A stretch of 64,000 bases of DNA from Macrostomum lignano (GCA_002269645.1 NIVC01000109.1:124001-188000); one strand, 5' to 3'; shown: positions 39,101 through 43,370, counted from the stretch's first letter. Notes: a model not told the origin generated them from the sequence alone. Made by a program: numbers and translations.

Positions 39101-42100
39101 AGCGAAAGCAGCCGATAGGTTAATGACAATTTTCTGCTAGACCAGCCTGCTTAATGTCGCATCTTAGCGAAAGCAGAATATCTGTAGGCTAAGCCAATCT
39201 GACACAGGAGAGAGAGTCCTGGGAGCTTTAGAGGTAACTCATTCATTTTCAGGACACTCCCTGATCCTTCCTAGCATACAACTTATGCTAAAATCCATTG
39301 ATAATGTTTATACCAAGTTTCTGTGCCAAGGGTCGCACAGTTTCAGTTTCCTGTTGTGCAAACGCCCGACAAATATCAAGTCCTCTGTTTGTCGGATTTA
39401 GTTTTCAGAAAAAATAACCCGACAGGCAACTCTGACAGCTTAAACAAAGGATTAAAATTCTCACAGCTTTCCATTTTGACGTGACATTTCTGTTGGTCCA
39501 TCGGAAACTTTTTCAGATCCATATTGCAGGAGAGCTTGACTGTGATTCTGCAATGGAAAATTTGCGATATTTTGGCTTCAGACAAATACTCGTAGAAGTG
39601 AACGAAGATCAAAGTCTGTTTTGTATTCGCTCAATCCTACGAAATCTCAGAGATGGAGTGGTAAGTCTTCATATTTTGGGTGTCCCTTTGCTCCCCAGAG
39701 GGGGCCAATCGGCCTAAATGCTAAAAATCCTACGAATTAATAGAATTGGACCAGCAATTTCATAGTAATTAACTGGAAAATAATTGAATCTATATCGATA
39801 TCGCTCACTTCTGGCTGAAAGTCACCTGGCCAAGCGGCTTAACCCTCAGCAGCAGGTTCGGCGTGGTGATCTCGTGAAACGAGCCCTCCTTCTCGTTGAT
39901 GAAGTACAAATCCGGAACCCAAAGTTCAGACTTTTTCGAGTTGAGCGTCAGAGACTGGTTGTAGCCGCGGTGCAGGTAAGCCAGTCTGGTGTCGTTCCAG
40001 TACTGACGAAGGAACATGTTCACTGAGTAGTCCTGTGTGAGGAGGGTGTCAATAGAATTCTTATATAATATTCTACAAAAAATGCTTTAACAGCTTTCAT
40101 CCAGCTTCAACTAAAAAAGCCATACTAGGCGACATGCAGTTAATTGATTAAAGAAACACAGCCTCTCTAAACGAGCATTAAGCTAATTTGAAAGTCTTTA
40201 CCTCTCCCAGCTGTTTTTTATAATTAGGCAATATTTCTAAACCGCACCTGAGCCCCAGCCGTATCCGACACAGAGATGTGGAGCCTTAGTCCTACCTTGC
40301 TTCCTACATCCTGCGACTTCCTTACTTCTGTTTTGCCCGAAGAACCTTACTGAAAGGACGCGCCACCTCCCCGACAGCGGGTCCATGGCGGCCCCCTCTC
40401 TAGGGCAATAAATAATGCCAGACAGTTCGCGTCGGGGACCAACCCTCTGAGGACGGAAACACGAGCCCCCTCTCTCACTCTCTACAAAGCTGGTGCCGCT
40501 ATGCAACAGAACAAAAATTTTCGAAGCAATTTTGACAGGAAAAACACAGAGAGACAGGCGGCGTAGAGTCTTGACCTCCGGCTTGCTTATTAGCGATTTC
40601 AAGCCTTGCACATTCCGTGGGTGCAGTCGGTGCAGACTTTGGAAAGAAAGAATTGAAATTTCAATTCTCTAAAAAATTTGCGCTGGATAAGGGCTTCTTC
40701 TTCTTAGCTTGAAAATAGACTGAATTCCGAATTTAAGTTCTCAAAGGACTCGCTTTTTACAATATTCAGCCGTAAGCTGACTTCTAAAAGAAATGAGGAT
40801 TAGGAAGAGTCAATTTTAGAGGCGGATCCTTCCACCAACTACTCGTAGCTAACAGTGGACTTACGAAACAAGTCTTATTAACCGTCTCGGCGCAAAGCTC
40901 GTGAACTGAATGAGATTATGCTACAAGGTTCCCCCGAGGCGGCAACAGACAGGCACTGGAGTGCCGATCAGTAAGGCTTGTCACGCGACTCCTTGATCTC
41001 CAGAAAGACTCCGGAAGGGTGTCGGAGAACTCGCGTCCAAAGCTCCCGACAGAAGCATGCTTCTGCGATGCGAGACGGGAATTCTAAATTCAGAAATCGC
41101 GCCCTCAAAGGAAAACTCGCTTAGAGACCTTTAGTCTCAAGACGGACGAGGAATCCGCGAGTCAAAAACAATGTGCTTGAATATTCAAAAGCAGAATCCA
41201 ACAACGCCAAATGAATGGCAAATAACTATAGAAGCACTATTAACTACATTAACTACAGAACACAACGTTCAGGAAACCATATGTCATACTCTTAACTACT
41301 GTTCAATACTGAATCCTGACCAACTTTTCAAGCGCATCAATTGAAAGGCGCAAATGCGATTCAACTAATTAATTCTCAGCAAAAATCATGCCATAGGGTC
41401 CCAGAATGCCCTAATTTACTGGGTCTTTGTAGCTCTTTGTAACTCACCATATTTATTACGTTGATAGAGCTCATAGCGTGCACCATCATTGACACCTCGA
41501 CGATTGTGGCATGACCTGAGTGGTTTACATATGTCAATTCAAATATTCAACTCTCCACAAGGGTCTCTGGGCGCTTCTGCGCAGTTCAGTCTGTGTTAAC
41601 ACGACCGTACAAAAGGCGGTCATTTTCAAATTATGCGCGCGCGTTTGCAGTGACAAGTGCGAGCAAAGTTAACGAGGTTTAACGATAACAAAGTGCGGCA
41701 ACGTGTTGGCAATACTACTGGGCCGTGTGACATGAAACTCGTCAATCCTCTGACAGTCTCCAACTGACACAATCTCCATCTGACACAATCTCCAACTAAC
41801 ACAACATCCATCTGACACAGTCTCCATCTGACACAGTCTCCGACTGACACAATCTCCATCTGACACAGTCTCCAACTGACACAATCTCCAACTAACACAA
41901 CATCCATCTGACACAATCTCCATCTGACACAATCTCCACCTGACACAGTCTTCATCTGACACAATATTCACCTGACAGTCTCCAACTGACACAATCTCCA
42001 TCTGACACAGTCTCCAACTGACACAATCTCCAACTGACACAATCTCCATCTGACACAATCTCCATCTGACACAATCTCCATCTGACACAATCTCCATCTG

Positions 42101-43370
42101 GTACAATCTCCATCTGACACAATCTCCATCTGACACAATCTCCATCTGACACAATCTCCACCTGACACAGTCTTCATCTGACACAATATTCACCTGACAG
42201 TCTCTAACTGACACAATCTCCATCTGACACAATCTCCAACTGACACAATCTCCAACAGACAAAACTTTCTATAATATAACTCGCACATTGAATAATTTAA
42301 TTATCATCTCCGGCACAAATATTATTGGTGAGAAAGTTTTTGACTATTTTATGGCTTAATTTAAACACAGAGTACGCGCCTTAACTGCAGGTCCGTACAA
42401 CATCAACTCCTTTAAATAATCACTTGAGCGTAAAGTGGATAGAGTTGAACTAACTATAAAGACGCAGCTATAACGTCACTAAGAAACGAATCGCTGCATG
42501 TGATGTAAGTGCAGTGTAAATACTCCATCTGCTTGTGCTGCAAATCTGGCATAATTGGCTCTTTATTGAGCCCTGGACTCACCATAGATCTCTCGTTCAC
42601 TCCGCTGATGGAGTGAATCATAGTGCTGACCTGAACTTTTATTGTCACGCCTGTGTGATAATGGAATGCGATTCAGGTGGCGTGGACCCTGCGACATTTG
42701 TCTTTAAAGCCAAGACCGAATTTGCGTACATAAAAACATAAAACATACTCGTAAATCTACCATCAAACTGCGCTCACCCGTGTACATGGAGGGTGGGATT
42801 GATTTGTCATAGTCCTGGAAGATCTTGGCCACGAATTCTCGCATGGTCTCATTGTTGTCTCCGATTCTGTGTGAGAGGTGGGGGATTAAGTTATCTATCT
42901 ATTTATCTATCTATTTATCTATCTGTCTATCTATCTATCTATCTATCTATCTATCTATCTATCTATCTATGTATCTATCTATCTATCTATCTATCTATCT
43001 ATCTATCTATCTATCTATCTATCTATCTATCTATCTATCTATCTATCTATCTATCTATCTATCTATCTATCTATCTATCTATCTATCTATCTATCTATCT
43101 ATCTATCTATCTATCTATCTATCTATCTATCTATCTATCTATCTATCTATCTATCTATCTATCTATCTATCTATCTATCTATCTATCTATCTATCTATCT
43201 ATCTATCTATCTATCTATCTATCTATCTATCTCACTCAGTCCCTGTCTCACCTGAGCTGTCTGTCCGTATGCACAAGTGTCCATGGTGTCCAAGGCAGCA
43301 GCAGCCACAGCAGGATGGCCTTCGGTGCATAATTGGAGTAAAAGTGCATAAAGACAGACGCCATTGGCAT
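33159..43370 (-). CDS. Anion-selective Cys-loop ligand-gated channel subunit (GlyR/GluCl/GABA-A-like)
   Basis: Exons 43252-43370, 42778-42866, [42583-42650 OR 41448-41515], 39809-40032, 39465-39547 (83 nt), 37753-37896, 37121-37350, 34228-34404 and 33159-33722. Cys-loop [15 protein letters not shown]; loop A LWVPDLYF; M2 [17 protein letters not shown] (PAR anion filter); M3 [21 protein letters not shown]; M4 [16 protein letters not shown]. Confidence 0.95.
33745..34232. repeat. 24-bp minisatellite (CTGATCAACAACAACCTCACCCAC)n filling Cys-loop intron 8
   Basis: About 20 units; on the sense strand each unit reads CAG|GTGGGTGAGGTTGTTGTTGAT. Confidence 0.96.
34978..35650. repeat. (GATA)n microsatellite with a GATG-variant tail
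   Basis: Direct reading. Confidence 0.97.
36369..37077. repeat. 30-32-bp minisatellite whose unit contains the hairpin CTGATGC-N10-GCATCAG
   Basis: About 22 units of CAGTCCCTGATGCACCACCTCAAGCATCAG(C/CG). Confidence 0.96.
38228..38395. repeat. Tandem duplication of a ~85-bp segment
   Basis: CCACTGTTTGGGTAGGGCTGGGGCC..TACATTGCCCA occurs twice in succession. Confidence 0.9.
38418..38635. mobile_element. Truncated third copy of the hAT-like MITE
   Basis: Starts TAGGGGTCCGCAAACTC and contains CTTCACAATAGCAACCCGGCCCGC..TTTGTGTCTCTTCTC followed by a CT-rich tract; right TIR not found. Confidence 0.6.
38957..39030. repeat. (GA)n microsatellite
   Basis: Direct reading. Confidence 0.95.
40277..41200 (+). 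mobile_element. Truncated LTR-retrotransposon fragment: 210-bp LTR, PBS-like site, degraded internal sequence
   Basis: TGTGGAG (40277) ... CTCTACA (40486) inverted termini, internal AATAAA, then TGGTGCCG 4 nt downstream (PBS-like; 8 nt complementary to a tRNA-His-type 3' end). No second LTR or intact ORF seen; right boundary approximate. Confidence 0.5.
41448..41515 (-). CDS. Alternative 68-nt exon 3B of the Cys-loop gene (mutually exclusive with 42583-42650)
   Basis: Flanked by ctcag and GTGAGT; same length (68 nt) and phases (1/0) as exon 42583-42650. Encodes (G)[22 protein letters not shown] versus (G)[22 protein letters not shown]. Confidence 0.88.
41748..42258. repeat. 16-bp minisatellite (TCTCCATCTGACACAA)n between alternative exons 3A and 3B
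   Basis: About 30 units with higher-order variants. Confidence 0.94.
42892..43231. repeat. (TATC)n microsatellite in Cys-loop intron 1
   Basis: Direct reading. Confidence 0.97.

Follow-up and report, generated by a model that had tools for sequence, protein, structure and literature searches.

A gene for a Cys-loop anion channel in the flatworm Macrostomum lignano raises the question of whether one short exon, present there in two very different copies, gives rise to two forms of a single receptor. The gene is encoded on the minus strand of the 64,000 nt stretch analysed here (NIVC01000109.1, 124,001 to 188,000; hereafter the window, with positions counted from its first nucleotide), and the two copies, which we have designated 3A (42583..42650) and 3B (41448..41515), both encode the region of loop 2. 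On balance we favour the answer that exon 3 was tandemly duplicated in this gene and that each productive mRNA carries one copy, which would yield two loop-2 isoforms. If both exons are used, one gene would provide two inhibitory-receptor isoforms differing at the interface between binding and gating. M. lignano is a tractable flatworm model for which transgenesis and RNA interference are available.

Both copies were reproduced from the minus-strand sequence as the initial annotation had described them, that is, as 68 nt exons of phase 1/0 with AG and GTGAGT sites, and the peptides that it quoted were recovered. Each copy encodes (G) plus 22 residues and covers the same structural segment, namely beta1, loop 2 and the start of beta2. 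The acceptor of 3A reads tcacacAG and that of 3B reads accactcAG; the donors of both read ATG/GTGAGT, and GTGAGT donors were found in this gene only at the two alternative exons. The pair is flanked upstream by the exon end at 42778 and downstream by the exon start at 40032. The former belongs to exon 2 (42778..42866), a constitutive exon of 89 nt that starts with (R), ends in phase 1, has a profile score of 22.9 bits and is present in the public protein models P0122, P0176 and P0191. The latter opens exon 4 (39809..40032), which is 224 nt long, encodes beta2 onward and was placed from the sequence and by tblastn. The three intervening introns measure 127 nt (exon 2 to 3A, 42651..42777, with the acceptor motif TCACACAG as at exons 2 and 4), 1067 nt (3A to 3B, 41516..42582) and 1415 nt (3B to exon 4, 40033..41447).

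An alignment of 3A with 3B showed identity at 36 of 68 nucleotides and at 9 of 23 amino acids (39%), with 14 of the 23 residues differing. The alternatives had been called unusually divergent, and they are so when set against the 56-74% amino acid identity found among the three Tribolium GluCl exons. When 3A and 3B are joined in one transcript, translation would end at codon 102, 27 nt inside 3B, and when both copies are omitted it would end at codon 105, within exon 4. This agrees with the earlier statement that including both or neither shifts the frame. Argued from this reading frame, mutually exclusive use of 3A and 3B is predicted.

To place the pair against chance, a profile of exon 3 was built from 49 non-Macrostomum homologues of other phyla and used to score every open AG-N68-GT candidate in the window, on either strand (n = 685). 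This ranked 3B first (16.2 bits) and 3A second (9.7 bits); the next best candidate reached 2.8 bits and the other 683 scored no higher than that. The exon pair is therefore more than a chance occurrence, as both copies far outscore every other candidate in the window. Judged by these scores and by their shared position, length and phase, 3A and 3B are homologous and code for one structural segment. No third copy of exon 3 was found in a six-frame scan of the window, and none of the gene's other exons had a duplicate in a tblastn search, so that there is no second alternative cluster.

Exon 3 aligned without gaps to glycine receptors over beta1, loop 2 and the first residue of beta2. At the tip of loop 2, 3A carries a glutamate within a polar and charged N-E-R and 3B carries a valine within a hydrophobic N-V-I. 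Both residues align with the loop-2 glutamate of glycine receptors, which we take to be E53 in alpha1 numbering. The loop 2 of C. elegans GluCl alpha, which reads ISKIDVVNMEY, has a valine at the same position (PDB 3RHW), and valine at the loop-2 tip was also found in other proteins recovered by the searches. The alignment and this structure bear out the contrast first noticed between an acidic 3A and a hydrophobic 3B at the E53 position, as well as the likeness of the latter to GLC-1. As aligned here, the N-E-R tip is the canonical bilaterian type and the N-V-I tip is the type of the flatworm relatives and of C. elegans GluCl alpha. Loop 2 meets the M2-M3 linker and couples agonist binding to gating, as seen in structures and mutagenesis of GlyR and GluCl. 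Because of this coupling, the two isoforms would be expected, by analogy, to differ in agonist sensitivity or gating efficacy, and the swap from a charged to a hydrophobic residue at the position of the GlyR glutamate offers a simple contrast of structure and function.

Joining of the exons by script gave a 10-exon gene encoding 565 residues. The Pfam ligand-binding domain PF02931 (Neur_chan_LBD) scored 160.5 bits in the 3A form and 159.4 bits in the 3B form, and the transmembrane domain PF02932 (Neur_chan_memb) scored 140 bits in both isoforms; all of these values were far above cut-off. Exon 5 (39465..39547; sequence, tblastn) encodes the Cys-loop of the extracellular domain, with two cysteines spaced C-x13-C. 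Exon 7 (37121..37350; sequence, Pfam, tblastn) encodes transmembrane segments TM1 and TM2, the M2-M3 linker and, ahead of TM2, a PAR motif, which is a marker of anion selectivity (PMC2064938). The nearest solved relatives were GlyR alpha1 (306 bits), GABA-A beta3 (254 bits) and GluCl alpha (249 bits). From these domains and motifs, the window gene is a GlyR/GluCl-like Cys-loop anion-channel subunit, as the initial annotation had claimed in calling it a Cys-loop chloride channel; its guess of a flatworm was also right, since segments of the gene were 96-100% identical to M. lignano UniProt models. Exon 6 (37753..37896; sequence, tblastn) spans the region from loop B to loop C and ends in VQYLTG. 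Its loop C is without the cysteine pair of glycine receptors, GluCls and nemertean relatives (VQYLTGKYSY compared with, for example, GNCTKNYLLGSFTC), and because this pair is absent the ligand class is uncertain despite the 'glycine receptor-like' names in databases.

Exons of the 3B type were also found outside this gene. One, a 68 nt AG..GT exon, is present in an ENA metagenome contig (L001:553-620, RATGVDVSIMVHGLSSINVIDM), ~645 nt upstream of exon 4; another is present in the monogenean Protopolystoma xenopodis (L007:10304-10371, KTTRVKISMYLHTISSVDVIEM); and a 3B-type segment is found in the M. lignano paralogue P0004, where it is known from the protein model alone. Comparison of 3B with the L001 exon gave a proportion of nonsynonymous differences (pN) of 0.18 and of synonymous differences (pS) of 0.68, alongside a pN of 0.20 for the constitutive exon 4 and a dN/dS of ~0.1 for the 3B type, and the introns flanking 3B and the L001 exon showed no alignment past the donor GTGAG. 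By these substitution patterns 3B is clearly alive and under constraint. Between 3A and 3B, pS was 0.69 (saturated) and pN was 0.41. Exon 3A has retained an open frame, a good acceptor of the TCACACAG type as at exons 2 and 4 and a perfect GTGAGT donor; family-typical residues, among them the glutamate of loop 2, are likewise preserved. Neutral drift was simulated from a 3B-like exon, and a trial counted as surviving if the splice sites were kept, the frame stayed open and the profile score was 9.7 bits or more. Of the trials, 0.3% survived when divergence was 25% and 0.04% when it was 35%, and none of 5000 survived at 47% (p at most 0.003). Since simulated drift seldom keeps sites, frame and score together, it appears unlikely that 3A is a neutral, long-dead relic, and this indirect evidence suggests that 3A, too, is maintained by selection.

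Whether the duplication is ancient or recent was addressed at homologous loci, for which one-to-one orthology with the window gene is not established. A single 68 nt exon 3 of the same phase was present in the annelid Paralvinella (L005:4691-4758), in the oyster Crassostrea virginica (L006:7699-7766) and in the monogenean (L007:10304-10371), and the end of the exon, M/ followed by D or E and then Y or F, was common to all three. As this distribution indicates, the 68 nt exon itself is old. AG-N68-GT and six-frame scans revealed no second copy of exon 3 at the annelid, oyster and monogenean loci. At the monogenean locus, there was no 3A-like exon within 10.3 kb upstream of exon 3, and exon 2 was not located there. 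No differences in exon 3 were found among the NCBI isoforms of Lineus, several oysters, Patella, Pecten, Mercenaria and Branchiostoma.

The duplication had been described as either independent or deeply ancestral; the first of these is favoured and the second is not supported, given the single copies in annelid, oyster and monogenean and the identical NCBI isoforms. Because those three loci are single-copy, the duplication looks lineage-specific; an origin within the flatworm lineage, separate from the duplications in GLRA2 and in insect GluCl and RDL, is most likely. Valine-type exons are found in all of the flatworm relatives, which points to 3B as the older, flatworm-typical form; 3A has been seen so far only in M. 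lignano. With a little less than even confidence, we suggest that this is a third independent origin of an alternative exon 3, in which one gene would toggle between the loop-2 glutamate (3A) and the flatworm and nematode valine (3B).

How would a single copy be selected? The spacing of 1067 nt between the copies and the 16 nt array within it were both reproduced, and the donors (GTGAGT) and acceptors (AG) of both copies are of the U2 type. Steric hindrance, already discounted in the initial annotation, and U2/U12 incompatibility were considered as the excluder; both were ruled out by the length of this intron and by the U2-type sites. The polypyrimidine tract had a value of 0.45 at 3B and 0.59 at 3A, compared with 0.36 at the inferred exon 9 acceptor and 0.55-0.73 at the other internal acceptors; the 3B tract is purine-rich, and only the inferred exon 9 acceptor is weaker. 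In the mechanism that we propose, each productive mRNA would carry exactly one copy of exon 3 and exclusivity would be enforced mainly by quality control of the reading frame, wrong products being truncated. Double and null products would probably be removed by nonsense-mediated decay. The choice itself may depend on trans-acting factors that act at 3′ splice sites of unequal strength, not on steric hindrance or long-range RNA pairing, such that 3A would be recognised by default and 3B would be used in dependence on an activator.

Exclusion might instead be enforced by competing RNA structures, in the way that a docking site and its selectors compete in arthropod Dscam and 14-3-3zeta, and RNA pairing was among the enforcers named in the initial annotation. 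The long introns, which rule out steric hindrance, would suit such a mechanism, as would a few inverted matches of 12-13 nt between the 3A-3B intron and the intron from 3B to exon 4 (42381-42393 with 40131-40143, and 42545-42556 with 40411-40422). However, when the longest ungapped Watson-Crick stretches among the three introns of this one species were compared with shuffles, complementarity beyond chance was not found, as the longest (13 nt with one mismatch) was equalled or exceeded in 13 of 40 shuffles, and the flanking introns are unconserved with the related contig L001. The search for docking-site and selector complementarity thus gave no more than shuffled sequence does, the proposal of pairing found no support, and we regard competing RNA structures as improbable. 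Exon 3A could also be a regulated 'poison' exon, its joint inclusion with 3B shifting the frame and down-regulating the channel through decay. Such a role would fit the stop that joint inclusion creates 27 nt into 3B and the stronger acceptor of the upstream copy, 3A. It would need no conservation of the protein, yet 3A scores 9.7 bits where random candidates reach at most 2.8 and its pN against 3B is lower than its pS; in addition, the exact match in length (68 nt) and phase is a requirement of a coding alternative. We therefore consider the poison exon very improbable.

A different possibility is that 3B is constitutive and that 3A is a duplicate which is silent or was disabled recently, being rarely or never included in productive mRNA. 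Only exons of the valine type are present in the monogenean locus, in the ENA contig and in the model of the M. lignano paralogue, and no counterpart of 3A was seen anywhere examined, all of which this explanation would account for. It accounts less readily for 3A having kept its frame, a TCACACAG-type acceptor, a GTGAGT donor and the loop-2 glutamate despite synonymous saturation relative to 3B, which neutral drift achieved in at most 0.3% of simulations, and a silent 3A seems unlikely to us. Lastly, the two copies could be an artefact of assembly in which two alleles or paralogues were collapsed or interleaved. The genome of M. lignano is highly repetitive and contains several near-identical copies of genes (P0122 and P0176 being examples), and the region is rich in tandem arrays. 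Against this, exon 3 alone is duplicated, with no other exon or flank; the copies differ at 47% of nucleotides, unlike alleles; and an older, independent assembly also gave models joining exon 2 to 3A and 3B to exon 4. An artefact of this kind is highly improbable.

Several observations weigh against alternative, mutually exclusive use of 3A and 3B. No counterpart of 3A was found in any other species or paralogue examined, and the paralogue model P0004 runs from exon 2 directly into a 3B-type exon. Scans for pairing, YCAY motifs and Rfam families identified no cis-regulatory element, and the decay step is putative. By BLOSUM score, 3A is as close to the best foreign exon of the glutamate type (47) as to the valine-type exons of Macrostomum (44-48); because these scores overlap and the exon holds only 23 residues, a tree of the exon variants is unreliable, and 3A may or may not derive from a 3B-like exon. 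The models P0122, P0176 and P0191 join exon 2 to 3A and all end at the 3′ end of 3A, and P0001 opens with a methionine within 3B and extends through exons 4-8. We infer the use of either exon in RNA, that of 3A above all, from the sequence, and a representative-sequence search found no Macrostomum transcript with a junction of 3A to exon 4.

The existing gene models were considered as evidence of splicing and rejected, their pattern being that of an assembly break: the 3A models end at 3A and the 3B model starts in 3B, so that they appear to derive from an older assembly broken at the 16 nt array. The public models of this gene are fragments, divided between 3A and 3B (A0A1I8J6U2, A0A1I8HK07, A0A1I8G5F9, A0A1I8J585 and A0A1I8IXB4, compared with the gene at 33159-43370 in the window). 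In P0191, exon 2 is fused to spurious upstream open reading frames (ORFs; 50.3-45.5 kb), and P0176 carries the name 'Autophagy-related protein'. With two alternative forms of exon 3, the UniProt and WormBase ParaSite models of the gene ought to be combined into a pair of full-length isoforms, each of 565 amino acids.

The 16 nt array itself is a minisatellite of 31.6 copies (41753..42254; sense unit GTCAGATGGAGATTGT) inside the 3A-3B intron. Analysis of the window revealed 29 tandem arrays with a Tandem Repeats Finder score of at least 200, which together cover ~19.0 kb or 29.7% of the 64 kb; arrays are also present in introns 1, 5, 7 and 8, and most of the larger introns of the gene hold one. 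Since it is one of 29 in the window and others lie in introns of the same gene, the 16 nt array can be treated as background. It had been pointed out as lying between the exons, and its presence was borne out, but a special role was not: as a candidate regulator it was rejected as unsupported amid 29 arrays. The array is most likely neutral background, and it probably caused the older assembly to break here. No cluster of YCAY motifs (the NOVA motif) was found near the exons, where there were at most 4 YCAY per 60 nt compared with a 99th percentile of 5 for the window background, and Rfam and tRNA scans of this region revealed nothing.

The remaining parts of the gene were as follows. Exon 1 (43252..43370) contains the start codon and the signal peptide, ends in DRQL and in phase 2, is the same in the UniProt model P0122/A0A1I8J6U2 and was matched at 100% by tblastn. 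Intron 1 (385 nt) is almost wholly a (GATA)n microsatellite, present as 85 units at 42892-43232. Exon 8 (34228..34404; sequence, tblastn) encodes TM3 and the start of the intracellular loop, and exon 9 (33159..33722) encodes the rest of this loop, TM4 and the stop codon; the acceptor of exon 9 at 33722 is inferred only from the frame and the AG. Intron 7 contains another (GATA)n array, of 169 units (34977-35651), beside a 32 nt array (36368-37075). Intron 8 (33723-34227, minus strand; array at 33722-34232) consists wholly of a 24 nt tandem repeat in 21.2 copies. In the sense direction, each repeat unit runs from a donor-like GTGGGTGAG to CAG and continues the reading frame of exon 8 (VGEVVVDQ). 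In principle, use of any of the ~21 in-frame donors of intron 8 could extend the intracellular loop in steps of 8 residues, and the UniProt model P0001 reads into this array.

Elsewhere in the window, a near-perfect (AGT)552 of 1.66 kb lies at 13580-15236. A neighbouring gene on the minus strand (~22500-30660) encodes a fragment of a RhoGEF (DH) domain (PF00621, 18 bits, below cut-off) in a single exon ORF at 30231-30659, and also has long, coding-looking 24 nt arrays at 27131-28601 and 29125-30134. The sole tRNA of the window is a tRNA-Arg (ACG) at 20061-20133 on the minus strand, and there were no Rfam matches in the window at the gathering threshold.

The contig L002 (ENA ERZ25070786, ctg120113l) encodes an intronless, full-length Cys-loop channel ORF of 463 amino acids (7927-9318) with a valine-type loop 2, SFGSINVVDM. 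A reverse-transcriptase ORF is found a few kb away. The channel ORF is a possible retrogene, and its lack of introns resembles that of the single-exon genes SmGluCl-2 and SmGluCl-3 of Schistosoma mansoni. L001 came from the same sample, which therefore includes DNA from a flatworm-like animal. In L001, the intron preceding the 3B-like exon contains a tRNA-like stretch (290-460, …ACCACTAGGCCACGGCAGCT…), which may be a tRNA-derived short interspersed nuclear element.

Among flatworm Cys-loop anion channels, SmGluCl-2 and SmGluCl-3 can be set beside the window gene without any claim of orthology. Both are single-exon genes (PMC3757052) and for this reason cannot have an exon 3 alternative; together with the intronless gene of L002, they make intron loss or retrocopying seem common among such channels in flatworms. 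A literature search found no report linking M. lignano to mutually exclusive exons, and none in the flatworm Cys-loop literature found. If the two forms of exon 3 are real alternatives, M. lignano would represent a third lineage in which the same 68 nt exon was duplicated. This would support a recurrent, convergent tuning of Cys-loop channels, make the exon a recurrent hotspot of diversification and provide a natural experiment on how the loop-2 residue sets gating.

In GLRA2, exon 3 is also 68 nt long and the two isoforms differ in agonist sensitivity; its copies differ at two residues only (V58I and T59A), and both keep the glutamate. In the window gene, by contrast, the copies differ at 14 of 23 residues, and one of these changes replaces the glutamate itself with valine. 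The position of the exon, its G plus 22 residues, its M/DY end, the tandem arrangement and the placing of variable residues in loop 2 are otherwise alike. Exon 3 of GLRA2 is a mutually exclusive tandem pair, and the choice between its copies is regulated by NOVA1 through YCAY clusters (PMC6079032). The window exons are without such a cluster, and the two duplications are, as far as tested, not common by descent.

In insect GluCl, exon 3 is described for Tribolium in the words '68 bp encodes 23 amino acids' (PMC10380907), and its copies are tandem and mutually exclusive, giving isoforms that differ in pharmacology and tissue distribution (PMC10380907, PMC13512814, PMC2064938). The insect exons 3a, 3b and 3c thus resemble the window pair in length, in number of residues and in tandem order. 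They differ in being present as 2-3 copies with 56-74% protein identity that are kept across insect orders, whereas the window pair shares 39% and one of its copies is species-restricted so far. The window gene is not a GluCl orthologue, as it scored 306 bits with GlyR alpha1 and 249 bits with GluCl alpha.

Alternative splicing of exon 3 is also found in RDL, where it alters agonist affinity (PMC2064938). The RDL exons 3a and 3b (and 3c) are likewise alternatives near loop D in an anion channel with a PAR motif, but these variants differ at ~2 residues, and RDL has a second alternative cluster at exon 6 that has no equivalent in the window gene. The claim that one and the same exon is duplicated in GLRA2, Rdl and GluCl was confirmed, the shared unit being 68 nt and 23 codons (PMC10380907, PMC2064938, PMC6079032). 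C. elegans GluCl alpha (GLC-1; PDB 3RHW) resembles 3B in the loop itself (K-I-D-V-V-N-M compared with S-I-N-V-I-N-M), but its loop 2 is fixed, with no splice alternative. What is new here is thus probably the flatworm case, the alternative use of this exon in GLRA2, insect GluCl and RDL being already known. Set beside these systems, and as judged from the aligned exons, the window gene is unusual in the depth of divergence between its two alternatives and in the swap of the key loop-2 residue itself.

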